In this document: piece after piece, positions 10,084 to 44,420 of the stretch
How positions within the stretch are numbered: position 1 is the stretch's first letter
Layout of the letters: every line of letters starts with the position of its first letter
NCBI RefSeq assembly: GCF_036971445.1
Contig: NC_091470.1
Span: 196,292,001-196,356,000, forward strand
Direction of reading: 5' to 3'
Length of the DNA stretch: 64,000 nt
DNA from: Narcine bancroftii
Taxonomy: Eukaryota
The notes under the pieces: generated by a model
Databases searched by the model: none
What the model saw: only the letters and a program-made list of their open reading frames with translations
Told to the model about the DNA's origin: nothing
Translations under genes and position numbers: made by a program

Positions 10084-10157
10084 TCAGCTGAACACAGGGG
10101 GAAGTGCCAGGCCAATCAGGAGGAGCACGGCGGATCCAATCATGGCTGTGGCGGCGT
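10084..10157 (-). CDS. Hydrophobic exon (D)AATAMIGSAVLLLIGLALPPVFS*, candidate GPI-signal/membrane exon of the B7-like IgV gene
   Basis: Acceptor TTGTTGTGCAG matches the phase-1 V exon; hydrophobic run then TGA; donor CAG|GTAAAG at 10064/10063. An alternative reading as a leader exon is given in findings. Confidence 0.6.
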
Positions 10158-10504
10158 CTGCACAACAAGAGGCAATCCTGTCTGATCTGCCTCATCACCC
10201 CCCCCCTCTGAATCCTCCCCAGCTGCCCGTTACTCTCCATCCTATCAGAGAGTAGCTTGCTCAGCCTCTTCCTCCTATCACCACTTTCCTTCTTGCTTCT
10301 TCTTCTCCACCCCCCACCCCAACCTGAAGCCCCCTCTCATCTCCCTAATTTCCACATGACCCCACATCCTCCCCTCTCTGCCGCTGACTCCCTCCCCACC
10401 GATCGCCCCCTTGACCCCTACCCCCCGTGACCGCAGGAGATGCCCCATGTGCCCGCACCTCCTCCCTCAGCACTGTTCTGGGCCCCTCCCCCACCACACC
10501 CCCC

Positions 10505-10750
10505 CCCAAACAGTCCTTCCAAGCAAAGCCATACTTCCCTTGTGTTTCCCGCGGGAGCCATCTCCTTCTCTTCATCGGGGAGACTGGGCGCAGACTGGGG
10601 AAATCACCTCACTGGGTGCCTTCGCTCCATCCACGGCTAGAAACCGGGACCTCCCAGCAGCTCACCACTTCACTCCCGCCCCCCAGGTTCCACCAAAGAC
10701 CAGCCACAAATCGGAGGAGCAGCTCCTGATTTTTGTTTTCCCCATCCAGC
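10505..10750 (+). mobile_element. Penelope-like element fragment (GIY-YIG region)
   Basis: Degenerate KQSFQ...LLFIGETGRRLG; related pieces near 13870-14500 and 19740-19900. Confidence 0.55.
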
Positions 10751-11154
10751 CTTAATGTCGACATCTCCTGGCCCGCTCCCCATCCTCCCTCCCTTCCCCC
10801 GTCCCTCTGTCTCCTCCAGCCCTCCCCCTCCTCTCCCTGTTTCCTGTTGTACTCCCCCTCCCTTGTCCCCCTGGTCCCCCGTGCCTTCTAAGCTGCGCGT
10901 GCAACACATTTCACACCCAGTGCGCAAAAGGTTAGTAAAACATAGTCATTACTAATTATTCTTATTGAAAATAAACTCTTGGCTAACATGGGTGCAATTG
11001 GGCAGCATGGGCTCTTGGGCCAAAAGCGTCCTGTTATCCTGCTGGACGTCTATATTTTTTCAAAGAGAGGGTTCTGGGGTGTGCGGTAGGGAAGGGTGAG
11101 GTTGTGGAGTCGGTCGGCCCTCTACTGGAATGTTCTATCAATCTGCCACTTCTT

Positions 11155-11695
11155 TCAATAAGATTGAAAGAGTGCAGAGAAGATTTACTAAGATGTGGCC
11201 GGGTCTTCAGGAACTGAGTTACAGGGAAAGGTCAACAGGTTCAGGAATTTATTCCCTAGAGTGTAGAAGAATGTGGGGAGATTTGATAGAGGATGTTGCC
11301 CGGATTTCAGGAACTGAGTTACAGGGAAAGGTTAAAACAAGTTCGGGACTTTATTCCCTGGAGTGTCGAAGAATGAGGGGAAATTTGATCAAGGTTTACA
11401 AGATTACGAGGGTTAAGGACATTTTGGATGCGAATGGGCCTTTTCCACTTAGATTGGGGGAGATAATACTGAGAGGTCAACTTTTAGTCTCTAAGGGGAA
11501 AGGTTTAGGGGGAAGTTCTTCGCTCAGAGAGCAGTGGGAGTGTGCAACGAGCTGATGTGGGGAACACGGTCTTGATCTTGTGTTTTAAGAATTGATACAT
11601 GGATGGGAGAGGTCTGGACGGTAAAGGAGTGGGAGCAGGTCAGTGGTTGGCACAGACTAGAGGGGCCAAATGGCCTGTTCTCGTGCTGTATGGTT
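11155..11695 (+). mobile_element. CR1 LINE 3' fragment
   Basis: KIERVQRRFTKMWPGLQELSYRER...YSLECRRMRG, typical CR1 ORF2 C-terminus. Confidence 0.85.
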
Positions 11696-11866
11696 TTCAG
11701 GGCCCTGAGCTGACAACTCTCAACACCAGGATGTTGCCCAGAGTTGCTGCTCTGATGGTTTCCCGCATTCCCATTCTGAGGGGCCTGGTACTGTACTGAA
11801 CTAGATTCAGCAGGTAATACTTCACCCTGGTCAAGGAGCTGGGGGGCAGTGGGAGAACCAACTGAC

Positions 11867-12229
11867 CTGTGACGGTTAAAGTGATGGAGGCACAGATGTC
11901 AACGGCATGTGGCCGCTGGGTCATCACGTTGCACTGGTACATGCCAGTGTCGTTGAGTGAGACGTTGGTGACGTTCAGGGATGCCTCCCTCCTCTCAAAC
12001 CAGTTGGCCACGATGAAGGTGCGTCCAGCAAACTGGTAGTCCTGGGTTTTCTGAGCCTGCCGGTCGGTTGTGTGAACCACCAGGTTGGCGGTGCCGTCGA
12101 GGACCTTTTGCCAGACAGCATGGCGAACTTCAGGCAGGGCTCCAGTCCAGTTGAATGAACAGGGCATCAGGACCCAGGAGCCAGCCACCACTTCGATGGT
12201 TTCCAGCTGCTTGCTGCACTGTAGGAGGG
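11867..12229 (-). CDS. IgV domain exon of a B7/butyrophilin-family protein
   Basis: 363-bp phase-1/1 exon (acceptor CTCCACCGCAG, donor ACAG|GTCAGT). Motifs: B-strand MPCSF, C-strand VWQK, LVVH, QDYQFAGRTF, ASLNVTNVSLNDTGMYQC, G-strand ITLTV; four N-glycosylation sequons. Confidence 0.9.
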
Positions 12230-12274
12230 CTGCGGTGGAGCACAGGGCTGGGTCAGTGGCGTTCACACTCATTG

Positions 12275-25480: not shown

Positions 25481-28400
25481 TTTAGGTAAATATCTTTCTA
25501 TGCCAAGGGAGTGGTATCTGCATGCGGAGTGATGCTCTCTCAGTGGAATGACCCAGAAATCTGATTGGCTGCTCCGCTCGACTTCACCAGGGATTGAACT
25601 TGGGTGAACTGGCTGAGCACATTGGACAGCACCGTTCGGCCGAGACTGCCCATGCCTGGTGCTCGGGGGCAGGCGCCACCGATTCCAATGGCGTTGCCTC
25701 TCCCCGGACCAGAGAACCAAGCCTCCGTGCCTCTCCCCAAATCAGTCTGCTCCCTCTCCCTCGCCCGGCACCCCTCTCCTGCCTTCTCATCCCCCTAACT
25801 TCATTCTCCCCCTGCTCTCCTTCCCTGACTCACTCCTTCCCCCATCCCACCCACCCCTCCCATCACCACACACTCCCCCTACGCCACTCTCCCGCACGAC
25901 CCTCACATCATTCCCCCTACTCTCTCCCCAGACCCCATCCCTCACTCCTCACTTTCTTTTCCTCCCATCCTTCCCTGCTCCTCCACTCTCTTTTTTCATC
26001 CACTCCCTCTTTTCCCCAACCCACCCCAATTCCTCCCCTCCTGTCCCCTCTATTGCACCTTCTGCTCTCTGCCCCTCACTCACCCCACCCCTCCCTTCTC
26101 TCCTCACCCCTCCTGCCTCCCCTCCCCCTCCCCACCACTCCCCTCTGCCATCCCTCCCTTTCTCTGTCCTCCACACCTTCTCCTCTTTCTCCCTCCCCTA
26201 CCCCTCCTGTCTCTCCTTCCACCCCACCTCTCTCTCCCTTCCCCATCTCTTTCTCCCTTCCCTCTCCCCACCTCTCCTCTCCACTCACCCTTTCTCTCTC
26301 CTCCACCCCTACTGCCTCCCCTACCCCTCCCGTCTCTCCCCCACCCCTCATCCCTCCCTTTCTCTCTCCCTTCTCCCTCCTCCCCTCCCTTCTCTTTCTC
26401 TCCCACACACCTGTCTCTCTTCCACACCCCTCTTTCTCTCCCCTCCCCTCTGTCTCCCCCAGTCTCATCCCTCCTTCGGCAGCAACCCATTGTAAGGGAG
26501 GGCGGTGGGTGTTCAGCGAAGGTGTGGGGGGGGGGGGGGGGTGTGGGTCGGGAATCCCTTGCCTGGCGTAACAGGATCTCGTAGTAAAATGAACCCCCTC
26601 CTGCCCTGAGCTGCTGGCGAGAGGGATTAGGCATCATCCTCTTCCGTTGGTCGCTGGGACAGGATAGAGGGTGTGTGCGTGTGTGGGGGGAACAGCCCCT
26701 TCACTGCGGCGGGTACCCCTCGAGGAGGGGGTTTTGCTGAGTCAGGGCCGCCCTGGCTGGGGCCTGAAACAAAATCCCAGCTCGGCCCGTGTGCGAGCTG
26801 CAGCCAGGGCGTCGCATGCTACAGCAAGGCTCTCCGCATCTCTCTCTCCCCCCCACCCCCAGCTGTTCACACAGCGCACTCTCTCTGGAGCCAGCATCAC
26901 CATTGTTCCGTCTGTCAGTCCCACACCCACAGTGAACACCTCACACAGCTGTCCCTCCATCCCCACGCCCAGCGTCTCCTCGCTGCTTTCTCCCTCCTCC
27001 TCTCGACCCCTTGCAGCCGGACCCCTCCTCTTTTAATCTGGTTCTGCTCTCCCACCCCCCCCCCCTTTCTCCCTTCTATTTCTATCTATCTCTCCCCTCC
27101 CGTCTATTCTCCTTCCCTTCTATTTCTCTCTCTCCCCTCTTTCTCTCTCTCAATCGCTGTCTCTCTCCCCTGTCTATTCTCTCTCACTTTCAATCTCTCT
27201 CCCTTCCCATCTTATCGATCTCTTCCCCAGCCCCACAAATTATTTTTCTATCCATTTCCCTTACCCATCACTCTTCCCTGCCCCACAGCCTTTCTCTCTC
27301 TTCTCCCGCTCCATCCTGCTTCAGGGCACCTCCATTCCATTCCTTCTTTGCCTCCAGACACTCCCCCTCTCTCCTCCCCATCCCCCTACCTCCCTCCATC
27401 TCCCTGTCTCCCCAATCCCCCCCCCATCCTCATCCCTCCTTCCCCGAGACCCGCGCTGCACTGCCGAAGTGGCTGGTTTTAACCCCCCCCCCCACCCATC
27501 CCATTTCACCGGGGATGGGCCTCGTTGGGCAGCCTGCAGTAATAAATGCGAGCCTCTGCTGGAGCCCCTGCCCCATCAGCTGGAGCCTTCAATGCTCACC
27601 GTCGAAAGGCCTCTGAGATGAGATGGTTTTTGCCAGCTGCTCTCCTCCTCGCCCCTTATCCAAGTGAAGCTGAGAACCCTCTCCAGTCCTTGTGTTATAT
27701 CAGGGAAACCTGACTTGCGCATTTGAATCCTGGCAGCTGATAATGCTGATGGGGGCAGGGAGGCAGATCCTGGCTTTCAATCAATCAATTTTGCTTTTCC
27801 ATTCATCAAGGGAGAAAGACTGGGAAAAAAATTGCAGGGATTACAAAATGTTGAAATTTCACCTTGTTTTTTCTCTCATCAGTTTTAAGCATCATTGTTT
27901 ATTGTTCTGCCCTCGAGTTGCACATTTACCCAGGCCAAATGGTGGAGCTTTCAGCCCCTTATATTCTTCCTGGATATTTTGTGGAAGGAGCATCGGCCTT
28001 GAGGTTACCCGTGGCATCCCAGCCTTGCCCCTGCTGCATTCATCAGCTGCTCCAATCTTTGCAGAGTCCGAGGAGAAGAGCACAAGCCCACCCCCGGTTG
28101 AGAAGGAGAAGCAGAGGAGACGGGGAAGGCAGTGGGGGCGCTCAGCAGCTGAGGGCCACAAGCTGCTCACGATCGGGGTGGTGGTGGGGGTCCTCTGGAA
28201 ACCGGCGCCGGGATTCTGAGAGGGCGCTAAAGGCTTCCCGATCACGTTGGAGGTTTGGGATCCAGGAGGCCGATGGATTGAACAGGAGTCTGTGCGGCTG
28301 TGGGAGGCGCTGGAGGCGGACACTCAGCGTCTCTGAAGGGACTCCCTTTTGCTTCTCTTTCTTCTACTGTTAGGGACGCCAGGCGACGCTCACGGTGAAT

Positions 28401-28592: not shown

Positions 28593-29338
28593 TGTGACAG
28601 AGTATTTTGAGGTGGCTTGGGGGGAATTGCTAGAGCAACTTGCACGTGCGCATGCACGCACGCACGCACGCACATTTTAAAAAACAGAATTTTTGCAGGA
28701 CTTTTGCAGAATGCTTTTTGCAAAGAGAGCAACAAAGATGCAGCATACAGCTTGACTGGGAGATCATGTGATTTTTTTCAGGCTGGCAGAACAGTTTTGC
28801 TCTCAGAGAGAGAAAGAAATCAGTTCCAGAAGGACAAGCTGGCAAATTTTGTCTGGTCAAAGGAGAAGAGTGGCTGTCTGAAAGGTGACTTGAAAGAAAG
28901 CGGATCATCTGGAGAACCCTGAAGAGGGGCAAGTTTCGTCAGCAAGACTGATTGAGAAGGAATCAGTTGTGGATGTCCTGGAAAAGGAATTTCTCTCTGA
29001 AGACCAACAAGAACCCTCCTGAGTGGTAACCATTTACCTGTTAAACACCAAAGCCTGGTGAACTTTATTAATACTAACTTCTGTGCACAGTACAAGAATG
29101 GCCTGCAACCTGTGAGATTTGATTGTGATCCAAAGAACTTTTCTAATCTTAAATATACATTACACACACCTGCACTTAGTATTAGAGGGGGGATTAAGTA
29201 GGTTAGGTAGTAATAAGTTAAAGTTTAATTCTGTTTTCTTGTTCCATTATAATTAAAAACTACTTTTGTTTAAGTAACCCTGTGTTGTGGTGCATATCTA
29301 TAGCTGCTGGTTTTTGGGGTCCTCTGGACTCCGTAAGA
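28593..29338 (+). mobile_element. Solo LTR (~745 bp) inserted into a V-SINE
   Basis: TGTGACAGAG...CTCCGTAAGA quasi-inverted ends interrupt the SINE text GGGAGAATGCAC | AAACTCCCTCCAGACAGC. Confidence 0.65.
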
Positions 29339-30342
29339 GTGAAAACTCCCTCCAGACAGCACGGGATTCAAATCCCAGTCCCTGGTCGCTAGCGCTTTAA
29401 CAGCACTGCACTAACCGCTTCACCAACCATGCCGGCCCCTTTTATAATGTAGTATTTCGTGACAATTAATGGAACCTTAACTTTTGAGTCGGCAGGTCGC
29501 CAAATACTCTGTCGAACTTCTGTAGGGGGACTGAAACGGGTTGGTATAGTCAGTCATATAATAAAATTATGAGGGGTGTAGACAGAGTAAATGTAGGTCG
29601 GCTTTTTCCACTGAGGGTCGATGAGATACAAACCAGAGGACAGGGGTTAAGGATGAAAGGGGAAGGGTTAAACTGGTTCAGACTTTATTCCCTGGAGCTT
29701 CGAAGAATGAGAGGAGATTTGATGGAGGTATTTAAAATTATGAGGGGGACAGACAGAGTAATTGTAGGTTGGTTTTTCCCACTGAGGGTGGGTGAGATAA
29801 AACCAGTGCATGTGGGTTAAGGGCGAAAGGGGAAAAGTTTAGGGGGAACTTTTTCACACAGACAGCGGTGGGGAATGAGCTGAGGTGGTGAATGTGGCTC
29901 AGTTTTAAACATTTAAGAAGAATTTGGACAGGTCCATGGATGGGAGGGGGATGGAGGCGCAGGTCAGCGGGACGAGGCAGAAAAATGTCCTGGCACAGAC
30001 TAGAAGGCAAAGGGACTGCTTCTCTGCTGTCATGTTCCACGACTGCGTCACAGCCTGCTTTGGGGGTTCAGGATCGTAGGTCACAAACCCAGCCCAGACC
30101 CATCTCAGTCTCTGGCCTCCCCACCCCCTGCAGACATCTCCATTGACTCACTGCCTCCGGGAAGCCGCCAACATCATAAAGGCCACCACCTCTTCCCACT
30201 GCTCCCTTCAGGCAGAAGGTACGAAAGCCCGAAGACCAGCTGCTCTCAGTTCAAGGACATTTTCTATCCAATGAATCTCCCCATACATTCCTGAACCTAA
30301 ACCAATTCTGGGGCCACCAGAAAGTTTGTACAATTGACACGC

Positions 30343-30627
30343 TGTGGCGGCTCACCACAAGGCAGGCGAACCGGCCCTGCTTGTAAGCCACGTGGCAGGG
30401 CAGCCGGTCAAAAAGGGTTTCCCTTCCTTCCAGCTCAGGGCTCAGAAACCCACACTTGGGACCGCGTGACGCCCGGGTGACGTCAGCACCCTCCAGCGTG
30501 GTTCTCAGCCAGGCCCGGGCTGGGAGTATAAGTGCAGTACAGCAGCTTGCAATAAACTAGTCTGCTCACTGAGCTCAACCTATCTGGTTGTGTATGTTAT
30601 TGCAGGAGCAGTGTAGCCGCCGCTACA
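30343..30627 (+). mobile_element. Solo LTR (~285 bp)
   Basis: TGTGGCGGC...GCCGCTACA inverted ends, TATAA, AATAAA, 4-bp TSD ACGC/ATGC. Confidence 0.8.
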
Positions 30628-32363
30628 ATGCCACTTTTCTCTTTCATCAACAGTATCTGCGAACATTGATCTTATCCTTTATATTTATCAACTCTTTCTG
30701 CATTGGTGAAATTTAATGTTTTGAGTGAAACACTTAAGTCTGCAGATGCCCACTGGCATCACTAGAGAGGGGTGCTGACCGCACCGGGTGACTCCATCAT
30801 GGGGGTTGAGAGACCCCAAAATGACAGTCCATAAAATTTCTGTGCAGTGTTTCAGCAGAAATTTATTATTTTTTAATTAAAAAAAAAATCCCTGTCATTC
30901 GTTATAACAAAAACCTTCTTCGTCAGCCCAGTTTACAATGTACCTACAAAGCTTACATGAATCAATGTACAAGGCTAAAACTTANNNNNNNNNNNNNNNN
31001 NNNNNNNNNNNNNNNNNNNNNNNNNNNNNNNNNNNNNNNNNNNNNNNNNNNNNNNNNNNNNNNNNNNNNNNNNNNNNNNNNNNNNNNNNNNNNNNNNNNN
31101 NNNNNNNNNNNNNNNNNNNNNNNNNNNNNNNNNNNNNNNNNNNNNNNNNNNNNNNNNNNNNNNNNNNNNNNNNNNNNNNNNNNNTTCCCTCTCCCCCCCA
31201 ATCTCCCTCTCCCCCCCAATCCTCGGACCCCCCCCATCTCCCCTCTCCCCCCCAATCCTCGGACCCCCCCATCTCCCTCTCCCCCCCCCAACCCTCGGAC
31301 CCCCTATCTCCCTCTCCCCCCCCCAACCATCTCCCCCTCCCCCGGCTTCCCCTGCCACCCACCTCACCCCTTGGCTTCTCCAGGTACCCACTACCTGGTT
31401 CCCCCAAACATCTTCTCTCTCGTGTCCTCCCTCCCACATGGTGAACGACGGCAGCCTGTGGCCATGCGGAATGACTCGGGATTGAATTTAGGAGCAGGGA
31501 GGTTCTGTTGCGACTGTACAGGTGAGGCCGCATCTGGAGCACGGCGTGCAGCTTTGGTCTCCATACTGGAGGAAGGAGGCGGTCCAGAGGGGTTCACTGG
31601 GCGGATCCCAGGAATACAGGGCTAGTCTATGAGAGATTGAGTCGTCTGGGACTGTACTCACTGGAATTAGAAGAAGAAGAGGGGATTTTATAGAAAGGTA
31701 TAAAATTATGAAAGGCATCAATAAGGGAAAGGTAGACAAGTTGTTCCCTTGGGTGGGGGAGACCAGAACTAGGGGATATAGCCTCGAGATCCAGGACAGA
31801 GATGAGGAGGAACTGCTTTCCCCAATGGGTGGAATTCGCTGCCATTGAAGCAGTGGAGACGGCCTCAGTGAATATATTTAATGCAAGATTTTTTAACATT
31901 AAGGATGTTTGAAAGGGCAGGCCAGTGGACATCATCTGTCAACCACATGAATGGTGGAGAAGGGCCCAACGGGCCGAATGGCTGACTCCTGCTCCTGTTT
32001 CTTACATCCACCTCTGACCTCTTGGGCCTGTGCTCCTCCATTTATTCGGGCACCTTATTACATTGCCCACACCTTAGTGAATGGCTCAGGCCCGAAATGT
32101 TGGTGAGGTATCTTTATCTTTGCTTCATAAAGGACATTGTTTGGCCTGAGTTTCTCCAACCTTGCAATTTTACTTCAATCACGGTGTCTGATTCAGCTTC
32201 AAAAATAAAATAGACTTTAGTGCCAGCAACGTGGGTTTGAATCCGGCGCTCTCTGTCAGGAGATCGCTCATTCTCTCCACCGCCCCACTCCCTATGACCT
32301 GCGTGGGTTTCCTCCGGGTGCCCACGTCCCATTGGCAGATGGTGGTGGTGGGAGCCAGTGGGC

Positions 32364-32544
32364 TCATCGGGCTCCGTATGACGAAGGAGAAGCTGAAAAT
32401 GGCTCTGCCTTCTCCGAGGACTGGTGCAAGTAGTTCTTTAGCGTGCGAGGGGAGCAGCAGGGCATCCACCTCCTGCATCCGCTGCTTGCCAGGATCGTTC
32501 GGATCTGATGCCGGCAGAGGTCGGTGAGGGGGTACCGGCTGGCC
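32364..32544 (-). CDS. SPSB: SOCS-box exon of the SPSB-family gene (contains 1-bp indels)
   Basis: Acceptor TCTCTTGTCCGCAG. Reading across frames gives QPYPLTDLCRHQIRTILGKQRMQEVDALLLPRTLKNYLHQ, with BC box L..LCR..IR and Cul5 box L.LP..LK.YL. Confidence 0.8.
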
Positions 32545-32792
32545 CTGCGGACAAGAGACATTACCTGCTGGCGGCACCTTTGGGACTGCTCGCCTCCTCC
32601 CTCTCCCTCCCTCACTGTTGAACTCAGAGGGCAGTCAGCAGAACCCTGGGAGGGTGCCCCAGTGAGTCATGGAAGGGTAATAGCCAACATTTCAATTCTC
32701 TGCTCCATTCCACAATGACATGTTTGTCCATGGTCTCATTAAAGATGACCTCCTACATCAATCAACGTGCCTTCCCCTCTACCACCATAAAA

Positions 32793-34270
32793 ACATGAGA
32801 AAATAAGAGCAGGAGCCAGGCATTCGGCCCATCGAGCCCTGCCCTGCCATTCAATGTGATTGTGGCTGATCTGATGATCGGCTCATCTCCACAGACCTGC
32901 CTTTTCCCTATATCCCTTCATTCCTCGACTATGTAAAAATCTACCCAACCTTGTCTTAAATATATTTACTGAGGTTGCCTCCACTGCTTCAATGGGCAGC
33001 AAATTCCACAGATTCACCACCCTCTGGGAAAAGCAGTTCCTCCTCATCTCCGTCCTAAATATACTCCCCTGGATCTAGAGGCCATGTCCCCCTAGTTTTG
33101 GTCTCCCCCACCCATGCGAACAACTTACCCACCTCTATCTTATCTCTGCCTTTCATAATTTTATACGTTTCTACAAGATTCCCTTCTCATTCTTCTACAT
33201 TTCAGCGAGTACAGTCCCAGACGTCTCAATATCTCCTCATAGGCCAAGCCCCTCATCTCTGGAATCCACCTGGTGTCCCTCCTCTGCACCGCCTCCAAAG
33301 CCAGTCCGTCCTTCCTCAAGTAAGGAGGCCAGAACTGCCTGCTGTGCTCCAGGTGCGGCCTCACCAGGACTTTGTACAGTCGCAGCAGAACCTCCCTGCT
33401 CCCAAATCCAATCCCTCCAGCGATGAAGGCCAATGTTCCATTGGCCTTCTTGCTAACTTGCTGCACCTGCAAACTAACCTTTTGCGATTCATGCACAAGC
33501 CCTCCTTCCGCACGGCCGCAGGCTGCAATCACTTGCCATGTAAATAATATTCTGATCTTCCATTTTTCCTTCCAAAGTGGACAACCTCATATTGTCCTCT
33601 ATCTGCCAGACCAGAATATTATTTACATGGTCAGCGATTGTAGCACGCTGCTGTGCAGAAGGACTTGGGAGGTTCTACTGCAACTGTACAAGGTCCTGGT
33701 GAGGCCCGATCTGGAGTACAGCGGGTAGTTCTGGTCTCCTTATTTGAGGAAGGACTGACTGGCCTTGGAGGTGGTGCAGAGGAGGGTCACCAGGTTGATT
33801 CCAGGGATGAGGGGGTTTCCCCAATGAGATTGAGTCGTCTGGGACTGAACTCGTTGGAATTTAGAAGAATGAGAGGGGATCTTGAAGAAACACCTAAAAT
33901 TATGAAAGACTTCGATAAAATAGAGGTAGGTAAGTTGTTCCCATGGGTGGGATAGACCAGAACTAGGGGACATGGCCTCAAGATCCAGGGGAGTATATTT
34001 AGGACGGAGATAAGGAGGAACTGCTTTTCCCAGCGGGCGGTGAATCTGTGGCAATATCGGCGCCCATTGAAGCAATGGAGGCAACCTCAATTAATATATT
34101 GAGGACCAGGTTGGCTAGATTTCTACATAATTGGGGAATTAAGGGATGTGGGGGAAAAGGCAGGTCGGTGGAGATGAGCCGATCATCAGATCTGCTACGA
34201 TCACATTGAATGGTGGAGGAGGGCTCGACGGGCCGGATGGCCGACCCCTGCTCCTGTTTCATGTTCTTAT
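32793..34270. mobile_element. Two CR1 3' fragments in opposite orientation (minus ~32793-33590, plus ~33660-34270) within the SPSB intron
   Basis: Both encode REVLLxLYKVLVRPxLE-type CR1 ORF2 and share the 3' UTR. Confidence 0.85.
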
Positions 34271-35237
34271 ACCCGCCAATGACCTCTTGCATTCGGACTT
34301 GTGCCCCTCCCCAGCACCGACAGATAATACCCACTAAATTTCAGAAGGAGGTTCAAAGTTCCAATTTATTGGCGCCACATATGGCCCCGAGATTCTTTCT
34401 CCTGCAGGCCTGTCTTATTGGTAGTGCAAAAAAAGCACATGACTCAAAAAAAGGTGTGTGAACACAAGGGGAGAGAAACGTCAACAAGGATATGCAAACA
34501 AATGGAACAATACAGAAAATATGGTGAAACTCATTAGAATGCGATTCATTAATCCGCGGAATCGCTTCATGCGCAGGTGTCTGTGGACCCCAAACTGCTA
34601 AGGGGCGGACTGATGACAATCAGCCGGTGACCCAACTCCTGCACTGACTGCCCCTGCCCCGATGTCCCACGCCGGACGCCCCTGCTGTGGGAGTTGATGG
34701 GTTTGCAGAAGATGTCTGCGAGAGTTTGTCTCCTGAGATGGCGACAGAGAGGGAGAGAGAGAGCGGGTTGCTAGAGATGTACCAAGACAAGGTTGGGTAG
34801 ATTTCTACATAGTCGGGGAATTATGGGACCTGAGGACAGGGCAAGTCGGTGAAGATGAGCCCATCATCAGATCTGCCATGACTCAGTGAATGGTGGAGCA
34901 GGCTCGACAGGCCTAATGGCCAACTCCTGCTCCTGGTTCTTATGAATCTGAGAGTTAGCGAGAGGGATGGAGGGGATACTGGGATGGGGTAAAAACACAA
35001 TGCTGGATAAATTCAGCAGTTCAAACAGCGTACTATATACAGTACGTTATGAGTTTCAGCCCTTCATCAAAATGTTGGCAGGTGCCCAAACAAAATGGTG
35101 GGGGGAGGGGTCAGGGAACAAGCACGGTCCCACAGGCAGGAGGTCATGGATGGATAAGGGAGGGAGGGCACAGCAACAAACAAGGGGGGGGGGGGGGGGA
35201 ATTGAGACTGGGAAATGAGAAAGGAGTGAGAATCAGA

Positions 35238-35505
35238 GATGGGGAGGAATGGGGCCGTAGAGTAAGAGAGGGGGAGGAATGGGGGGAGAGTAAGAGAGGG
35301 GGAGGAATGGGGGGAGAGTAAGAGAGGGGGAGGAATGGGGGGAGAGTAAGAGAGGGGGAGGAATGGGGGGTAGAGTAAGAGAGGGGGAGGAATGGGGAGT
35401 AGAGTAAGAGAGGGGGAGGAATGGGGCGAGAGTAAGAGAGGGGGAGGAATGGGGGGAGAGTAAGAGAGGGGGAGGAATGGAGGGGGGAGAGTAAGAGAGG
35501 GGGTA
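35238..35505. repeat. ~25-bp minisatellite (AGAGTAAGAGAGGGGGAGGAATGGGG) next to the SPSB donor site
   Basis: About 10 tandem copies. Confidence 0.95.
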
Positions 35506-35526
35506 TTTGACTGGCTGGCCACTTAC

Positions 35527-36206
35527 CCTGCAGCTGGTTGATGTAGGTGAGGGTGATACAGGCGTTTCCCCACACACAGCTGATCATGGGGTACAAGGTC
35601 TTGTTCTCCAGACCCCCGAAGCCAACTCCCAGGTACTGCCCGTCCACCACGAAGCTCAGGGTCCCCTCGTCCGAATCCAGCACGACCAGGAAGGTGTCGG
35701 GCACGGGGAGGAGAGGTCCGGAAGGTGAGTCCGGGTAAAGGCGGCCGGCCCGGCCGGCGTGGTACAGTCGCCCGTCCACCAGCCCCCAGCCCCACGACTC
35801 GCCGTCCTCACCGCCCACCAACACCCGGTAGCCGGCAGCATGGAGGCCGGCGCTCGCCGTTCCCCACCCCCACCGCGGCGTGGCTGCCCCTCTGCGCTGC
35901 CGGCCAGGACACCCTCCAGACGTGCAGCCCCTGCCGGGAGCCCACGTTGACCCGCACGCCATCCGTGCTGTCCGGCACCCGGAGGCGGCGGGCCGTCAGC
36001 TCTAAGCAGGGCGGCGGAAGGACCCCGCTGCACCTCACGTTGGGAGAGTGGTCCCAATCGCTCCAGCCGTTCCGTGCCTGGACGTTCACCGGGGCAGGGG
36101 GCAGGTCCAACAAGAGCTTCAGGCGCCAAGGCATGGGATGACCCAGTCCCAAAACATGGCTCGTCCCCTCCTCCCCATGGGACTTTTTAACCCAGTTCAA
36201 GCCCAT
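35527..36206 (-). CDS. SPSB: SPRY/B30.2 domain exon of a SPRY-domain SOCS-box protein (SPSB1/2/4 family), one +1 indel near 35863
   Basis: MG start (AGGATGG); [82 protein letters not shown]; phase-1 donor G|GTAAGT just before the SOCS box. Confidence 0.92.
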
Positions 36207-36562
36207 CCTCAATGAACTTCATTAAACTTCTCTTCAAGAAAAAGTTTGCAGCCTGACTCCCCTGGAGATTCTCAGTTGTGCTGTGCAATTATACATATAC
36301 ATCTTTCATCCATCTTATCTGCCGCGGAGGCTGCAACGTGCGCTGGGAGGAGATAGCTGGGCCACCCACTGTCACCTCTACACCACGGGCAAGGTCGAAG
36401 CTTCTCGTCAGCCAGCCCACTCTCCCCGCCCTTCTGGCCTTCCGATTGTGCAAGGGGTGCGAGTGTCCTAGTCGCTCGCTGGCGATGTGGTTGGAGGAGA
36501 AGGGGAGGGGTGAGAGGGGATAGGGGGAATGGGGAGGGGGGTGAGGAGAAGGGGGGGAGGGA

Positions 36563-36766
36563 AGTAGAGCACATCGAAAGAACCAAAGACTTGTTGATCC
36601 AAACCAAGACTTTTATCAACTAAAAGACTGGAGCGTATCACAAGTAGGTCGACCAGTCCAGAATGACCTGGTCTGTCCAGGAGCAATCCTTAAAGACCTG
36701 CCAGTAGGTGTGGCTACACTCTCAGCCAATCTGTACATATATACCTTGGTGATATGTACTATCACA
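36563..36766 (-). mobile_element. Solo LTR (~204 bp) upstream of the SPSB coding exon
   Basis: Perfect 5-bp TSD AGGGA on both sides; the minus strand begins TGTGATAG and has TATATG and GATAAAA. Confidence 0.8.
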
Positions 36767-39700
36767 AGGGATGAGGAGAAGGGGAGGGGGGAGAAGAGGA
36801 GGAAGGGGAGGGGAGGAAGGGGAGAAGGGGAGGGGGAGAAGGGAGGTGGAGAAGAGGAGGAAGGGGAGAAGAGGAGGAAAGTGAGAAGAGGAGAAGGGGA
36901 GAAGGGGAGAAGAGGAGGGAGGGAGGGAGGGAGGGAGGGGAAGGGGAGGGCTGGGGTGAGGTGGGGAGGAGGGAGGGTGAGAAAGGGTAAGGAAGGAGGA
37001 GGTGAGGAAGAGAGAATGAGAGAGAGGGAGAAAAAGAGTGGGAGCGAGTGTAGGTGGGAAGGAGACAGAGAAAAGGGTGAGAGAAGGAAAGTCAGGAGTG
37101 AGAGATGGAAAGAAAGGATAGAGAGAGAAAGGGAGGAAGGAGGATTATGTAGATTCGGGGAAGTGAGGGGGTCGGACAGGGGGATGGAGGTGAGAGACTG
37201 AGAGGAGGGAGAGGTAGAGAAAGAGGCAGGCGGAGGGAGAGGGGAGAGGGGGAAGGGAGAGAGAAAAAGAGTGGGAGATAATGAGGGAGACGGGAGGGAG
37301 AGAAGGTGGGAAGGAACAGAGTGAGGGAGAGAAAGAGTGGGATGGGTAAGGAGTGGGTGAGGAATAGTTTGAAAGAGATGTGGAGAGAGAGTGGTGAATA
37401 AAGAGAGAGGGTGGGAAGTTGCCAGGGAAAGGGTGAGAGAGGAATAGAGAGAGAGAATGTTGGGAGTGTGAGAGAGACAGGGAGGGAGAGACACAGGGGA
37501 GGGACAGAGACAGGGAAGAAGAGAAGGAGAAAGTGAGAGGGGGAAGGGGGAAAAGAGAGGCATGAGGGGAGAGAGAAAGGAGAGGGAAGGGGAAAAGAGA
37601 GAGACAAGGAGGGAGAGAGAGAGAGAGAAAGGTAGGAAGTGGGAAGGGTGAGAGACATAGAGGGGGGAGAGGGATGGGGAGAGACAGCAAGGGAGGGAGA
37701 GAGAGGTTGGGAGGGAGGGTGAGGGTGACAGAGGCTTGTGATGTGATGCAAGGGGAGCTGCGGCCTCGCTGTGCAGGGAGGTGGTGATGTGACGACTGCA
37801 GGGGAGATAACGATGACGTCGCTGCCTCCGAGCATCCTTCTCCCAGTTCAGTGATCAAGGGCACAGAGAGTGAGGTGGGGGGGGGGGGGGGGCAGCTTAT
37901 CAGCGGGCAACACAGGAGCTGAGAGCACACAGCAGCAGGCCTCAGAAACAAAAGCAGGAGACCGTGGGGGTGGGCCTCAGCAGTCCAGAGGAAAGACAAA
38001 GAATTAATCTCCCTTGGGGTGGGTGATTGCTGTCCGTTCAGTGGTGGGAGGATAATGGTGGGGGATACCCCAAGATTCTTATGGCCTGACTCTTTAATTT
38101 CCCACCCCACCCCCCCCCCCCCCAACCACTCCTGATGTGTCCTCCCTGCACCTGTCACAACAAGGTCAGGAACAACACCCGTCAGCATCCAGAGCAACCA
38201 TTGCCGCCTCCTCCACATCAGGGAGACTAGACGCAGACTGGGAGCTCACTTCGCTGACCACCTTCACTCTGTGCACCGCAATAGCAGGCATCTCACAGAG
38301 GCCAACCGTTCCCCACGCCGACCTGCCCGTCTGTGGCCTCATGCTCTGTCACTGGAGGAACACAATGTTCTGTCTGGGACACTCTCCCACCAGGTTACAT
38401 TAACGCTCCCACCCTCTTCCCTCTCCATTCAGAGAGCTGCCCCCTCTCCCAGTCACTTCTCAGCTTCTTTGTCTTCTGCCCTCCCACCTGAGGCCTCTTA
38501 CCTGCTGGCCTGTGCTCGTTCCTGTCCTTCCCTCCTCTCCTCCTCCCCTGCTCCTTTCTACCCCTGCCCCTTCCTCCCTCCTCTCCTCTTCNNNNNNNNN
38601 NNNNNNNNNNNNNNNNNNNNNNNNNNNNNNNNNNNNNNNNNNNNNNNNNNNNNNNNNNNNNNNNNNNNNNNNNNNNNNNNNNNNNNNNNNNNNNNNNNNN
38701 NNNNNNNNNNNNNNNNNNNNNNNNNNNNNNNNNNNNNCTCTTCCTCCCCTGCCTCTTCCTCCCTCCTCCCCTGCCCCTTTGCTCTCTCCTCCTCCCCCCT
38801 ACCCCTTCCTCCCTCCTCCCCTGCCCCTTTGCTCTCTCCTCCTCCCCCTACCCCTTCCTCCCTCCTCCCGCTGCCCCTTCTTCCCTCTCTCCTCTCCAAG
38901 GCAACCTCTGATTTTTCTGTTAACAGGCATCTAACTTGGCCATGTGCGTTGCTAAGGAGTTCCTGTCAGTCGTGACCTGGATATAGTTCATCATCAAAGA
39001 CCCTCATAAACCTCTACAGGTGAAGAGCATTCTGGCCAGTTGGTATGGAGGCACCAACTCTCAGGGCAAGAATAAACTCCAGAGGGTTGTTAACTCAGCC
39101 TGCAACATCACAGGCACCAGACTCCACTCGTCAAGGACATGGACATGAGGCGCTGTCTTAAAAAAGACCCCCCCCCCCCCACCCAAATCACCACCCAGGC
39201 CAAGCCCTCCTCACTCTGCTACCCTCGGGAAGGAAGTCCAGGAGCCTGAAGACGAGCACAAGGGTGGTTTCTTTCCCTCCGCCATCAGGTTCCTGAACGG
39301 ACAATGAATCGCAGACACTGCCTCACTTTGACTTTTTGTGAACTATGTTTATTTATTGTTGTATGGTGGTTTATATAAATGTTTGCCCTGTGATACTGCC
39401 GCAAAACAATGAATTTCGTGACTTCTTCATGACAATAAATTCTGATTCTGGTTCGATCTTCTCAAATGTGGACGATCAGTTCACCTGCTGAGCATCTCCG
39501 TCAAACTCCTTGCCATTGGTGGCTGGGCTTGTCAGATAAGTTGAAGGGACCCTGGGAAGGGTTGCATTCAGGGGCAGGACAGAGGAAACTGGGGTTAAGT
39601 TGGGACATCAGAGTGGAATGTGGAAGTTCTTGTGGGATGTGAAAGTGCCCTCCAAGTGCCCGAGAGGCGCCGTGGGGAGAGACAGTGCCTCATGGCTCCG

Positions 39701-40371
39701 GAGTCCTGGGTTCCATCCTGACCTCGGACGTTGTCTCACATACATGCTTGTGTGTGTGTGATACAGAAGACAGAGACTATGTGTGAGAAAGGATGAGAGT
39801 GAGGGGTATGTAAGAGAGAAAGGGTGGGAGAGAAAAAGTGTATGTGTGCGTGGGCACGTGTGTGTAAAGTTAGAAATGAGCAGGCGCTGAAGATAGTAGA
39901 TGGGGTGGGAGTGAAGATGAACAGTACTTAACCTTTCAGATTGAAAATCTTTGCCAATTTCCAAACCTGGCCAGTTCTCCAGAACATTAACCCTGCCTTT
40001 CTCTCTCCATGGATGCTACCTGACTGGCTGGCTGGCTGCATCACGGTCTGGTATGGGGACACCAATACCCCACCCGAGCGTAAAGCCCTGGAAAAGGTGG
40101 TGGACACAGCCCAGGACATCACGGGCAAATTCGTCCCCCACAGGTGAGAACATCTAGTGAATGCCGCCGTCCGGGAGCAGCAGCGATCGTCAAGGACCCC
40201 ACACGCACCTCAGTCCACGCTCTGTTCTCGCTGCTGCCATCAGGAAAACAGTGTCGGGGCCCCAAGACTCGCACAGCCAGGTTCAAGAACAGCCGCTCCC
40301 CCTCCACCATCTGACCCCTCAACGACAAACTCAATCAGGCGCTCATTTAAAGGCTCCAACTTTGCACATTA

Positions 40372-40978
40372 CACTGGACAACGAAGATTTTGCATCCTGA
40401 ACAATATTGTGTGTATTTTATGGATTTTGGACTGCTGATCATTAAAACTTTTCAATCAGGTACCATTTTACTTTAGATATAACCTATTTTTGGGATTTTC
40501 TGTCATATTTTAAGCCGACTTCAAGCAGACAAAACCATGAAGGGCAACATATCGTTGAAAATTCATTTCCTGCATTCACCCTTGGACATCTTCCCGGCCG
40601 ATCTCGGTGCCGTCAGTGACGAACACGGTGAAAGGTTTCACTGGAACATGGCGACCGTGGAACAGGGTATTGGAGCAACTGGAATCAATTGATGCCGGCC
40701 GACTATTGTTGGCCGCTGACCTGAGAGCCGTCAGATGCCAAGTACAAACGAAAATTAGCGGCAGAACATTTTTAGGTCGGTTGAAGTGACGCAAAGTGTC
40801 AGCGTCATTATGCGATTAAACGCGGTAAATTCAATAAAAGTTAATTTAATGTTTCTCCGACTTCCAACGTGATACAGCAAATCTGAAATCATTTGTGTGC
40901 GTTCGGCTTGACAACTTCATCAATCCCCAATCTCTTTTCAGGAAGTGAAATTTTTGAAAAAAAAATTGGGGTCCAGTG
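40372..40978 (+). mobile_element. Internally deleted Chapaev3-type (CMC) DNA transposon
   Basis: CACTGGAC...GTCCAGTG termini flanked by TTA/ATA (TWA target); degenerate transposase C-terminus SLKIHFLHS.LDIFPADLGAVSDEHGERFH...ADYCW. Confidence 0.75.
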
Positions 40979-41247
40979 ATATTTATTTTGGAGGGGAACA
41001 GCGCTGGGCTCCTGGAGACATTGCGGGACCAGGAGACAATGCTGGAGGATTGGGATGCACGATTCAGGTCTCGCTTGGGAGAATGACAGACTCGAGATGG
41101 GATGCAGGGGCAGTGGGAGCAGCCAATGGGTTCAGGGGAAGCGACCTGGTGGCACAGACTAGAGGGCCTGAATAGCCTGTTCCCGTCCCGCAGTGTTCTG
41201 CATTCGACATTGTGAGGTAATTTTTAAAAAATTTGTTTTCATTATGG

Positions 41248-41650
41248 CCCACGGTGGGTGTAAACGGTTAGCCAGCCATACCGCCAGCGATCGGAACCGG
41301 GGTGTGGGGGGGGGGGGGGGGGGCAGTTCGAATCCGACACTGTCTGTAAGGAGTTTGTATGTTCTCCCCATGTCAGGGCAGGTTTTCCTCGGGGGCTCTG
41401 GTTTCCTCCCACCATTCAAAATGTATGGTTAATTGGGTGTAATTAGGCTTGTGGGCCGGAAGGGCCTGTTACCGTGCTGTATGTCCACATTTTAAAAAAA
41501 ATGTAATAAAGTCCCAATTAACCTACAAAGCTCATAGTTTCTGGAAGGTGGAGCACCCGGAGGAAACCTGGGGAGAGGATACAAACTCCTTCCAGACAGC
41601 GCGGGATTTGAACCCTGGACCCTATCGCTGGCGCTGTGATAGCGATGCAC
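41248..41650. mobile_element. Two tRNA-derived V-domain SINEs, tail to tail
   Basis: Box-B-like GTTCGAATCC, V-domain GGTTTCCTCCC and CR1-like tail. Other copies near 2040, 3640, 6490, 13560, 15250, 15900, 16090, 22200, 28450 and 32230. Confidence 0.8.
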
Positions 41651-42300
41651 AAGTGAGGGTATATCGACAGGCCGAATGTTCTGTGTCGTCCACAGCAGAC
41701 TCGTCTGTCTGCCTTCGAAGAACTGGAATCTTGGGACAACTACGGCGAGAGGCTCGGCGGGTCAAGGAGTGTCCATATGGTGGGCGAGTCCAAATGGTCA
41801 GTCAGCCCCCTGGGACGGTGGCCACAGCGGCGGGCCCAGCGAGGGGCTCAGCAGCTGCATGTGCCACTTGTGGACAGGGTGACCCGCACGGGCTGCTGGA
41901 GATGGGATCTGAGAGGGGGCTGAGGGCAAGGAGAGTACTGAAGGGGGCTTGGGGTGGGGGGGGCTTCCCAATCATATTGGAGGTTTGGGGTGGCCACAGG
42001 AGGCGCTGGGGGTGAATCCACGGACGTCCGGTGACTCTGAAGGGACTCTCTATTGCTTCTCTTTCTCCCGTACTGTAATGGGTGACCATAACGGTGTCTT
42101 ACAAAAAGAAGATGATTTTATGTAATATTACATGTTTGGTATCATTACATGACAATAAAGGAATATTTCCACACCTGTCCATCCATCCATCCTCTTTCTC
42201 TTTGTCTCTGATTCTCTGGAACGTGGGGTCTTGGGGGAGGTGAGTGGGTGAGCAGGCAATGAACAAGCAGGGGACAGGTTGTCTCCTGCTTGGCACTAAA

Positions 42301-42336
<36 letters not shown>

Positions 42337-42364
42337 CCCCACTCCTGCACAAAGGAGTTAGAGA

Positions 42365-42390
42365 AGGAAGTGAGTGTGTGTGAAACTTAA
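42365..42390 (+). promoter_or_regulatory. Candidate ETS site (AGGAAGTG) in the TATA-less promoter of the VJ-type gene
   Basis: About 200 bp upstream of ATG 42573 in non-repeat sequence; motif match only. Confidence 0.3.
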
Positions 42391-42572
42391 TCCTGGCATC
42401 GCCTCTGGTAGATGTTGACTCAGAAGGCAAATACATCACGAGCTAGGATGGACACTCTGCAGTCCGTGACCTGACACTGTATGAGCTGAGGTCTCCGAGT
42501 GGGTACTCCTGCTCCCTGAACCGAGGGTCTTCATGTGAGACATCAAACATCAGCTCATTGATACCTGGAGAC

Positions 42573-42633
42573 ATGGACATCGAAGTGATTCTCTCCAGTG
42601 TCCTGGTCGCCACCTGTCTCTTACTGATTAAAG
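42573..42633 (+). CDS. Signal-peptide exon MDIEVILSSVLVATCLLLIK(G) of the VJ-type Ig gene
   Basis: GACATGG Kozak context, hydrophobic core, phase-1 donor AAG|GTATGT matching the exon at 44064. Confidence 0.85.
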
Positions 42634-43159
42634 GTATGTCAATCAGTCCATCAGTTGGTCTTTCTCCCTTTCCCCAGCACACCTGCCCCCCCACCACTGT
42701 TCCGCTCTCTCCTTTTCACTCTTTCTGTCTCTCTTCCCTCTCTCCATTTCTCCTTCTTACCTTTTACTTTCTCTCCATCTCTCTATCCATTTCTCACCCT
42801 CTAGATCTCTCTCCTTCCCCTCCAACATGGGATGTTTCCAATGATGGGAAAATCCAGAACCCGGGGCCATGGTTTGAGGATAATAGGCAAACCATTTAGG
42901 ACCGAGATGAGGAGGAATTTCTTCACCCAGAGGATGGTGAATCTGTGGAATTCATTGCCACAGATGGCAGTCGAGACAGGTTCATTAAATATATTTAAGA
43001 GGGAATTAGATATATTTCTTCAGTATAAGGGTATTAAAGGTTACGGAGAGAAGGCGGGGACAGGGTACTGAACTTTAAGATCAGCCATGATCTCGTTGAA
43101 TGGCGGAGCAGGCTCGAAGGGTCGAATGACCTACTCCTGCTCCTATCTTCTATGTTTCT

Positions 43160-43560
43160 ATCACACACCCTCCCCTCCATCACACCCCCTCCCCTCCATC
43201 ACATACCCTCCTCTCCCACACCCCCTCTCCTCCAACAACCCCCTCCCCTCCATCACACACCCTCCCCTCCATCACACACACCCTCCCCTCCATCACACCT
43301 CCCTCCCCTCCATCACATATCCTCCTCTCCCACACCCCCTCTCCTCCAACAACCCCCTCCCCTCCATCACACCTCCCTCCCATCCATAACACCCCTCCCC
43401 TCCATCACACACCCTCCCCTCCATCACACACCCTCCCCTCCATCACACACACCCTCCCCTCCATCACACCTCCCTCCCCTCCATCACATACCCTCCTCTC
43501 CCACACCCCCTCTCCTCCAACAACCCCCTCACCTCCATCACACACCCTCTCCTTCATCAA
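43160..43560. repeat. ~19-bp C-rich minisatellite (CCCTCCCCTCCATCACACA)
   Basis: Tandem copies visible. Confidence 0.9.
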
Positions 43561-44063
43561 CCCTCTTGCCTCCATCACTCACCCACCTCCCCTCCATCAC
43601 AGTCCACCCCTCTATCAAACATCCCCTATCCTCCATCGACTCCATCACATACCCCCCTCCCCTCTATTGACTCCATCGGTAGGTGTACAGAATGGGCTGC
43701 CAGAGGGGGTGGATGAGGCAGGGACTATTGCAACGTTAAAGAAACATTGGGATGGATCCAGGGACGGGATGGGTTTAGAGGGGTGTGGGCAGGTGGGACC
43801 AGTGTGGGTGGGACATGTTGGTTGGCATGGGCAGATTGGGTAAAAGACCAGTCTCAACAGTAAATGACCCGATCAAAGGTACTTGGGTGGGTATGTGGAT
43901 AGGAAAGGTTTGGCTGACGTGGACCAAATGTGGGTCAGCATGGAGGGATGGGATGAATGGCCTGTTTAGGGTAGGGTATACCTGGTGAAATCGTGCTGGG
44001 GCTGAGGGATGCCGGTCAATGCAATGCTCCTTGACATGCCAACAACCTTTCTCTCACCTGCAG

Positions 44064-44420
44064 GGCTCGTGGCGGGAGGCGGCGTTCACCAATCGCCGCT
44101 CTCGCTCGAGGTCCCCGCTGGCTCCAGCGCTGAGCTTGTCTGCCGCTACAACCAGCCGGCCACCACGGTCCTTGAGGCGGCATTCCAGTGGGTCCTGCCG
44201 TCCGGCCGGCTGTACGCCCTAGTGCCTGGGGCCAGGACGGGGGGCCAGGCCAACAGGCGGGCGACTGTCCATGCCAACCTGCGGACCAGGAGCAGCCGGT
44301 TGCTGATTGACTCTGCCTCGCTGGCCGACAGCGGCCTCTACCTGTGCACCGTGCAATTCCTGGAGCCTCTGCCCATCGTCCAGATGGAAGGCCCCGGCAC
44401 CTGGCTTCATGTTATCCAAG
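44064..44420 (+). CDS. Germline-joined VJ-type IgV exon, CD28/CTLA4/TMIGD2/NKp30-like receptor
   Basis: 357-bp phase-1/1 exon (CTCACCTGCAG| ... CAAG|GTACGA); VHQSP, GSSAELVCRY, FQW, LADSGLYLC, FG loop TVQFLEPLP and J-like GPGTWLHV. Confidence 0.9.

Follow-up and report, generated by a model that had tools for sequence, protein, structure and literature searches.

Lymphocyte activation is under the control of B7 ligands and CD28-type receptors, two families whose origin is an open question. Genetically linked receptor-ligand pairs are represented by NKR-P1/Clr, CD2/CD58, and CD244/CD48, which are of the C-type lectin or CD2-family kind and not of the B7/CD28 type. To our knowledge, no B7/CD28-type pair is linked in mammals. 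A survey of the CD28 family describes nine members and contains nothing on linked ligands (Quiniou et al. 2024, PMC11599192). The locus described here comes from the lesser electric ray, Narcine bancroftii, where two immunoglobulin superfamily (IgSF) genes stand head to head, one encoding a B7-type variable (V) domain and the other a VJ-type V domain. The whole stretch analyzed, referred to as the window, comprises 64,000 nt (assembly GCF_036971445.1, NC_091470.1:196,292,001-196,356,000, forward strand).

The protein encoded on the minus strand shares its V-domain sequence frame with VTCN1 (B7-H4/B7x) and CD276 (B7-H3). A further likeness to the ray protein is that B7-H4 terminates in hydrophobic residues and has virtually no cytoplasmic tail; a GPI anchor has been proposed for B7-H4. 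Unlike VTCN1 and CD276, the ray protein has no immunoglobulin constant (IgC) domain, is only about 166 aa long, and carries an additional A-strand to G-strand Cys pair and an invariant TQRPH loop between the F and G strands (FG loop). The absence of an IgC domain and of a long tail also sets it apart from B7H6, the ligand in the NKp30 (NCR3)/B7H6 system.

For the plus-strand gene, there are three systems to compare. With CTLA-4 and the chondrichthyan CD28/CTLA4 homologues, it shares a single V domain in which the F strand, the FG loop, and the G strand align without gaps, P-L-P lies over P-P-P, and GxG is in place. Outside this region, however, the V domain is closer to the T-cell receptor (TCR) V-alpha domain, and there is no Tyr motif, no stalk Cys, and a YxxxxT motif in Narcine only. 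CD28H/TMIGD2 and CD28HL1-3 resemble it in an acidic Pro-rich FG loop followed by GNG or GxG, and its relatives with an immunoreceptor tyrosine-based inhibitory motif (ITIM) and an immunoreceptor tyrosine-based switch motif (ITSM) recall CD28HL3. In contrast to CD28H/TMIGD2, its loop reads E-P-L-P-I rather than E-I-P, is shifted by one residue, and is not accompanied by a YxNx or YESF motif. NKp30 is likewise a non-rearranging receptor with a VJ-type V domain, and frog NKp30 is a detectable relative (1.6e-8), but it falls in a separate clade at about 29 bits against the family profile, and the transmembrane (TM) segment of the ray protein is uncharged.

The start codons of the two genes lie at 17273 (minus strand) and 42573 (plus strand), a separation of 25,300 bases, which is an estimate because it includes 481 N of estimated length. 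An earlier note, made from the sequence of the window, had called a leader exon and an IgV exon on the minus strand and a leader exon and a VJ-type exon on the plus strand, with about 25 kb between the start codons. These positions were confirmed and the splice phases are consistent. A motif scan together with tblastn found no further Ig exon in the whole window. Both genes are conserved across species and are without names. The two are real, separately conserved IgSF genes of cartilaginous fish. At a probability of roughly 0.72, the locus as a whole reads as a B7-type gene whose product is V-only and of the glycosylphosphatidylinositol (GPI) type, a VJ-type receptor gene with a CTLA-4-type loop, and a perhaps decaying SPSB gene between them.

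The plus-strand gene opens with a leader exon at 42573-42633, which encodes MDIEVILSSVLVATCLLLIK and the first base of a Gly codon, ends at the donor aaa g/gtatg, and matches the N terminus of the RefSeq proteins P0002 and P0003. The VJ-type IgV exon at 44064-44420 (plus strand) is phase 1 at both ends and contains the FG loop C-TVQFLE-PLP-IVQME-GPG-TWLHV. It is 100% identical to P0002 and P0003, which are two isoforms labeled "uncharacterized protein" (XP_069776023.1). In RefSeq isoform X1, the V exon is extended across 44421-44483 (plus strand) to a second donor, aca g/gtaat, which adds TTPIPKLSPSPSLHSSPKST, 21 residues in frame. The extension was considered as a secreted read-through form and rejected; it is an ordinary alternative donor and remains in frame.

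Beyond the V domain, the RefSeq protein continues with a stalk of N-glycosylated repeats of about 20 residues, a TM segment, and a 32-residue tail. None of the exons for the stalk, the TM segment, or the tail lies within the window; no stalk or TM exon is found up to base 64000, and the next plus-strand exon must therefore be more than 19.5 kb away. The Narcine product has a single extracellular IgV domain followed by the stalk, TM segment, and tail, and only one V exon is found in the window. There is no Tyr in the Narcine tail and no Arg or Lys in the TM segment. The identification of the gene as a non-rearranging, germline-joined VJ-type single-V receptor with a Pro-rich FG loop was borne out.

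An exhaustive HMMER search with the plus-strand V domain returned 41 proteins at E ≤ 0.001. The top matches are unnamed proteins from Hypanus, Amblyraja, Heterodontus, Stegostoma, Cetorhinus, Scyliorhinus, and Callorhinchus. The first V domains of the orthologues in eight chondrichthyans form one clade with support of 98/96, and the order within the clade follows the species tree, with the chimaera outside and the three batoids together (99/95). This is therefore one old orthologous gene of Chondrichthyes. Orthologues of both ray genes are only 40-58% identical, and a word-index search accordingly recovered no more than one or two relatives for each. The LEPLPI loop region does not vary between chimaera and rays. 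Of the 34 invariant alignment columns, nine are located in L120-L135, which spans the FG loop and the G strand and reads L-[EK]-P-L-P-I ... G-x-G-T-x-L. The same orthologue alignment contains no conserved tyrosine motif, stalk Cys, or TM motif. The TM YxxxxT of Narcine was considered as a CD28/CTLA4 dimerization motif and rejected as not conserved, with YSYWMT in Narcine and FSIWMA, DSIRMR, and FTIWTG at this position in orthologues.

A second tier of relatives, at 45-75 bits against the family profile, consists of chondrichthyan multi-V proteins with ITIM and ITSM tails and of amphibian proteins. The amphibian members (P0022, P0034, P0038, P0042, and P0043, from frog, salamander, and caecilian) are unnamed and score 45-67 bits against the chondrichthyan profile. 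Their loops read P-L-P or P-P-P ... G-x-G, also P-L-P ... G-N-G, and some of their tails have an ITIM and an ITSM. The wider receptor family is therefore not restricted to cartilaginous fish. At 20-40 bits come TCR V-alpha, frog NKp30, and a lungfish CD28-like protein.

The RefSeq models of two orthologues, P0004 (Hypanus sabinus) and P0005 (Amblyraja radiata), have one or two extra V domains that fall with the ITIM-type multi-V family in the tree. These extra domains represent either a real gain of domains or read-through fusion of neighboring genes. In Narcine, no extra V exon is found within 19.5 kb of the plus-strand V exon.

Whether the plus-strand receptor is CD28-like depends on which part of the V domain is compared. 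Foldseek and VIA-align with the plus-strand model return only TCR and antibody V domains, then CD8, MPZ, and NCAM, and do not discriminate between receptor families; the VIA-align Z scores to TCR V domains are 15-16. With the 36-residue F-G hairpin (F strand through exon end) as query against the PDB, CTLA-4 accounts for the best 18 of the 26 matches, ahead of any TCR. The alignment of the hairpin to CTLA-4 is gapless over 31 residues (query ADSGLYLCTVQFLEPLPIVQMEGPGTWLHVI, E 0.007). The LEPLPI loop occupies the MYPPPY register of CTLA-4, and it matches the YxC-x6-PxP-x5-GxG frame that Quiniou et al. (2024, PMC11599192) tabulate for CTLA4 and for the CD28/CTLA4 homologues of chondrichthyans. 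The suggestion that this is a CD28-like receptor stands for the F-G hairpin, for which CTLA-4 is the best match in the whole PDB, and does not carry over to the V domain as a whole, which is nearer TCR V-alpha. Membership of CD28, TMIGD2, or NKp30 proper was not supported; there is no cytoplasmic Tyr motif, no E-I-P, and no charged TM residue.

A more accommodating placement would make the plus-strand gene an undescribed CD28 family member in the wide sense, near the CD28HL2/CD28HL3 branch. The ITIM/ITSM multi-V relatives would then be the chondrichthyan counterpart of CD28HL3 and the plus-strand gene a tail-less paralogue of them. The frame YxC-x5/6-PxP-x5-GxG is common to CTLA4, the chondrichthyan homologues, and CD28HL2/HL3, for example, WIPSPILRRSGNG with an ITIM and an ITSM (PMC11599192), and both motifs are present in the relatives P0010, P0012, P0034, and P0038. 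CTLA4-like and ICOS clusters are among the nearest Atlas clusters of the plus-strand gene, and the hairpin match to CTLA-4 points the same way. The CD28HL2 and CD28HL3 loops and the ITIM/ITSM of CD28HL3 also recall the second-tier relatives, which makes a CD28H-like affinity a reasonable conjecture.

Against this placement, no orthologue has a tail Tyr motif or a stalk Cys. The lungfish CD28-like V domain, the only named member compared, scores 27 bits against the family profile, whereas the amphibian relatives reach 45-67 bits, and the lungfish protein is not grouped with the family in the tree, the backbone of which lacks resolution. Published CD28-family synteny markers, among them fsd1/stap2, man2b2, slbp/tacc3, and prkab1 of CD28H and the CD28H-like genes, were not seen in the window, which is too short for a decisive test. 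The strings "PLPI" and "EPLPI" are absent from the tables and supplements of PMC11599192, and the accession numbers differ as well, including those of the three clustered chondrichthyan genes described there, whose loop sequences are also different. The plus-strand gene is not among the nine published CD28-family members. Membership in the wide sense is a tentative placement, to which we give somewhat less than even odds. Two other assignments were rejected. CD28X needs YxCx6PPPx4/5GxG together with EYEDM, which is not present here, and PLPI is missing from the published tables; UrIg and UrIg2 both carry C domains.

The minus-strand gene extends over about 7.5-17.35 kb of the window in four exons, the coding parts of which sum to 501 nt, or 166 codons plus a stop. 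The coding part of the leader exon (17210-17273, minus strand) specifies the signal peptide MAMSRILLPLLLMAAAFSSAT and the first base of the next codon, with the ATG at 17273 and the donor acg g/gtgagt; the 5' untranslated region (UTR) reaches upstream to at least about 17350. The IgV exon (11867-12229, minus strand) comprises 121 codons, is phase 1 at both ends (cag/cc ... aca g/gtcagt), is covered exactly by RNA contigs, and matches the Pfam V-set domain at 2e-9. The B7 hallmarks cited in the earlier note were all located in this exon, with AVWQK, LVVH, QDYQFAGRT, and ASLNVTNVSLNDTGMYQC each found. The tail exon (10064-10157, minus strand) follows ttgtgcag and codes for D-AATAMIGSAVLLLIGLALPPVFS-stop, with the stop codon at 10086-10084; it is defined by the RNA joint and by alignment with the shark tails. 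The last exon (7491-7791, minus strand, 3' end approximate) contains 3' UTR only and follows the acceptor gtttgcag/gt, with 250-301 nt represented in the contigs.

The transcript evidence comes from three public runs (X1-X3) of one study, the contigs of which were aligned to 9700-12500. The runs contain 17-18% of sampled words from 10000-12400, which is about the share of the exons. Each run yields one contig of 802-902 nt that lies on 10062-10157 and 11867-12230 with zero mismatches. The joint 10157/11867 occurs in all three runs and has CT..AC on the plus strand, which is GT..AG for the gene. The loose contig end at 10062 maps to 7761-7790, and every contig is spliced from about 10064 to the start of the 3' UTR exon at 7791. 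Upstream, the contigs continue into the leader exon end in two of the three runs and into an exon ending at 16812 in the third. In X2 and X3, the loose ends are the reverse complement of the leader exon end, and the X2 contig extends 141 nt beyond the 5' end of the V exon. The runs were presumed to be RNA, and splicing of the contigs is itself evidence for this; the gene is therefore transcribed.

Because the RNA joins the V exon directly to the tail exon, the main product lacks an IgC domain; the 1.7-kb intron between these exons contains no Ig-like frame either. The stop codon lies about 20 nt upstream of the last junction, so nonsense-mediated decay is not expected. In run X1 alone, the V exon is joined to an alternative upstream exon (16812-16902, minus strand, donor gag/gtgaat); this exon contains in-frame stops and lacks both an ATG and a leader, and the isoform is probably nonproductive. 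A search of a 5.8-billion-protein collection in the range of 106-338 aa returned no Narcine protein entry for this gene. It seems that the gene (10084-17273) is unannotated or differently modeled in the public annotation of Narcine.

Two features of the introns of this gene may be mentioned here. A short repeat at 11110-11391, between the V and tail exons, has a summed contig depth of 16,000-56,000 in run X1, where the exons of the gene have a depth of about 250; the repeat is probably a short interspersed nuclear element (SINE)-like sequence present in very many transcripts. In intron 1, a long array of units of about 21 nt at 12534-13296 is open on both strands (ITLTGTE... on the plus strand and VSVISVP... 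on the minus strand).

The minus-strand protein has orthologues in two sharks. The basking shark (Cetorhinus) match, P0001, is 168 aa long and 57% identical to the Narcine V exon; its NCBI label is "V-set domain-containing T-cell activation inhibitor 1-like" (VTCN1-like). With this protein as the query, a whale shark (Rhincodon) protein, P0056, was found at 58% identity. Identity among the three species is 46-57%, and all share the design of one V domain plus a tail. Four Cys, the TQRPH FG loop, an N-W-F-E stretch, and the ending VPLFS/PPVFS are kept in all three, and the IgC domain is absent from the two shark orthologues as well. The tail is 24-26 aa in each species and runs from small residues through a short spacer to 14-15 uncharged hydrophobic residues and the stop; its last 15 residues have a mean hydropathy of 2.3-2.45 and no charge. 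This tail has the shape of a GPI-attachment signal, and the product reads as a V-only protein of the B7 type with a probable GPI anchor. It is not a canonical B7 ligand because it has no IgC domain. Literature searches turned up nothing relevant on a V-only or GPI-anchored shark B7.

A profile built from the three orthologues ranks CD276 (3e-10), VTCN1 (6e-10), and PD-L1 (5e-9) first in the PDB, with cover of the whole domain. Behind these come MXRA8, JAML, pIgR, and CXADR. The frame W-Q-K, L-V-x-H, Q-D-x-x-F-x-G-R-T, A-S-L...D-x-G-x-Y-x-C aligns with that of CD276. The nearest Atlas clusters are VTCN1, BTN1A1-like, and HHLA2, with Thy-1 clusters also present (0.92, 166 shared features). In the tree, the minus-strand family groups with a lungfish CD276-like V domain with support of 85/77. 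The assignment of this V domain to the B7 type was upheld, with the three B7 proteins leading the profile matches and the shark orthologue named VTCN1-like. The plus-strand V domain, by comparison, forms its own clade and is, over its whole length, nearer TCR V-alpha.

The same protein could also be read as a Thy-1-like or CTX/JAM-like GPI-anchored adhesion molecule whose likeness to B7 is that of any V-set domain. Thy-1 is built in the same way, with one two-disulfide V domain between a signal peptide and a GPI signal, and its Atlas clusters are among the neighbors. The single Narcine V exon ranks CXADR first (2.7e-6), and MXRA8, JAML, and pIgR are close behind B7 in the profile search. However, the best three profile matches are all B7 proteins across the whole domain, whereas CXADR is matched in the E-F region only, and the W-Q-K to A-S-L frame aligns with CD276. 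VTCN1 is named first by both NCBI and Atlas, and the overlap with the Thy-1 clusters stays below 170 features. An adhesion molecule of this kind is an unlikely identity for the minus-strand gene.

There are indications that the two genes are neighbors in sharks. In Cetorhinus, the receptor (XP_078390002-4) and the B7-like protein (XP_078390009) are both on one scaffold of 13,014,033 bp and are separated by four accession numbers. In Rhincodon, LOC125487828 (the B7-like gene) and LOC125487821 (a relative of the receptor that bears an ITIM) share a scaffold of 11,054,923 bp. Near-consecutive numbers in NCBI models read as adjacent genes, and on that numbering the two genes are probably neighbors also in the basking shark and, loosely, in the whale shark. 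The linkage proposed for related species appears to be kept in the basking shark; in the whale shark it would be loose and involve a related receptor.

In the window itself, all three runs of N lie between the two 5' ends and leave the exons and introns of both V genes untouched. The gaps at 25346-25480 and 30985-31184 have dissimilar left and right flanks, and continuity there therefore depends on the scaffold alone. The third, at 38592-38737, lies within a single CT-rich satellite array with an identical 22-50-bp unit on both sides. No genuine reading frame crosses the gaps, and only low-complexity artefacts among the open reading frames (ORFs) span the N runs.

Several points weigh against reading the locus as a B7-type gene beside a receptor gene with a CTLA-4-type loop. 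For the plus-strand gene, whole-domain sequence and fold searches rank TCR V-alpha first, and CTLA-4 and CD28 are absent from the top 50-60 matches. The match of its hairpin to CTLA-4 is marginal at E 0.007, the backbone of the tree around its clade lacks resolution, and its stalk, TM segment, and tail lie outside the window and rest on the RefSeq model. On the side of the minus-strand gene, it takes the three-sequence profile to bring B7 proteins to the top; when the Narcine V exon is used by itself, CXADR, through the E-F region, scores just above VTCN1. The AlphaFold model of this V domain is poor (pLDDT 58), and the putative GPI anchor is read from tail composition. As for the arrangement, three assembly gaps separate the genes in the ray, and the shark neighborhood is drawn from shared scaffold size and near-consecutive numbers, not from coordinates.

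The linkage raises the question of whether the two products are a receptor and its ligand. In such a cognate pair, the LEPLPI loop would bind the GPI-anchored B7-like V domain, as MYPPPY of CTLA-4 and CD28 binds B7-1 and B7-2, and linkage would have been kept through coevolution. A B7-type V domain does adjoin a receptor with a CTLA-4-like F-G hairpin, and the FG loops of both proteins have stayed invariant over long divergences. The shared scaffold and near-adjacent accession numbers in the basking shark fit this picture, as does the whale shark B7-like gene near a related receptor, and the linked pairs known from other families would provide the precedent if the ray genes prove to be paired. 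However, the receptor family is represented in eight species but the ligand in just three, which is weak evidence against pairing given the limited ligand search, and an SPSB gene intervenes. There are also many ITIM-bearing relatives of the receptor with similar loops, and the locus may be a plain receptor cluster. With many related ITIM receptors nearby, an ordinary IgSF cluster is the safer default, and conserved linkage alone fits such a cluster equally well. A cognate pair held together by coevolution is unlikely, and mutual binding of the two products, suggested by family analogy and by the apparent linkage, would be similarly improbable. It is somewhat less likely still that the genes form a cognate co-signaling pair that has been adjacent since before the ray-shark split, preserving the linked state proposed for a primordial immune complex and a tenth CD28-type lineage that was lost in bony vertebrates.

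The gene between the two had been called SPSB. An SPSB1/4-like SPRY reading frame is indeed present on the minus strand, and it bears a frameshift. Its first coding exon (35527-36206, minus strand, ATG at 36206) matches SPSB4 at 5e-33 and SPSB1 at 7e-31 in two overlapping frames, which cover residues 24-116 and 100-223 of SPSB4. The overlap therefore indicates one extra base near 35857-35873, in the run ggggtggggaacgg. Judged from the sequence, the frameshift may be real, marking a decaying copy or pseudogene, or it may be an assembly error. Further downstream, some 3 kb from the SPRY exon, a SOCS-box-like exon (PLTDLCRHQIR...LKNYL) was recognized by pattern match and reading by eye at 32366-32560 on the minus strand, with approximate bounds, in an ORF that spans 32366-32666. 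It has lost the stop that usually follows LKNYLxxx, and its acceptor is out of phase with the donor at about 35527. The ORFs tested in the spacer contained no other protein domain; the SPSB1/4-like gene and transposons are the other content of the window.

The transposons include a decayed gypsy-type long terminal repeat (LTR) retrotransposon with reverse transcriptase, RNase H, and integrase at 45832-47351 (plus strand), in the long intron after the plus-strand V exon. ORFs similar to the reverse transcriptase of long interspersed nuclear elements (LINEs) are found in the same intron at about 54.2-57.2 kb and 58.4-60.7 kb. The G+C content of 58000-62000, also in this intron, is 0.29, compared with about 0.52 elsewhere.

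The invariant FG loops argue for a conserved partner for each of the two proteins. The minus-strand product would sit in the outer leaflet of the membrane or be shed, and it may act as a ligand or decoy that has no signal of its own and shows a B7-like V front face. The plus-strand product would be a type I receptor with one germline-joined V domain, a glycosylated stalk, a TM segment, and a short tail without a signaling motif. Its LEPLPI loop may bind a conserved, nonpolymorphic partner. The receptor could signal through a partner chain, or it may be the tail-less counterpart of the multi-V relatives that carry an ITIM and an ITSM.

For the two families, this locus adds a B7-type protein cut to one V domain on a lipid-anchor-type tail, which is kept in a ray and two sharks and is transcribed. 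It also adds an unnamed receptor family, found from chimaera to ray, in which a V framework like that of antigen receptors carries an invariant CTLA-4-type loop, and there are indications that the two genes stayed neighbors. If the two products do not bind each other, each would still be an orphan immune surface molecule with a conserved partner elsewhere. If they do, cartilaginous fish would offer a simple, genetically linked co-signaling module that can be tested with recombinant V domains.

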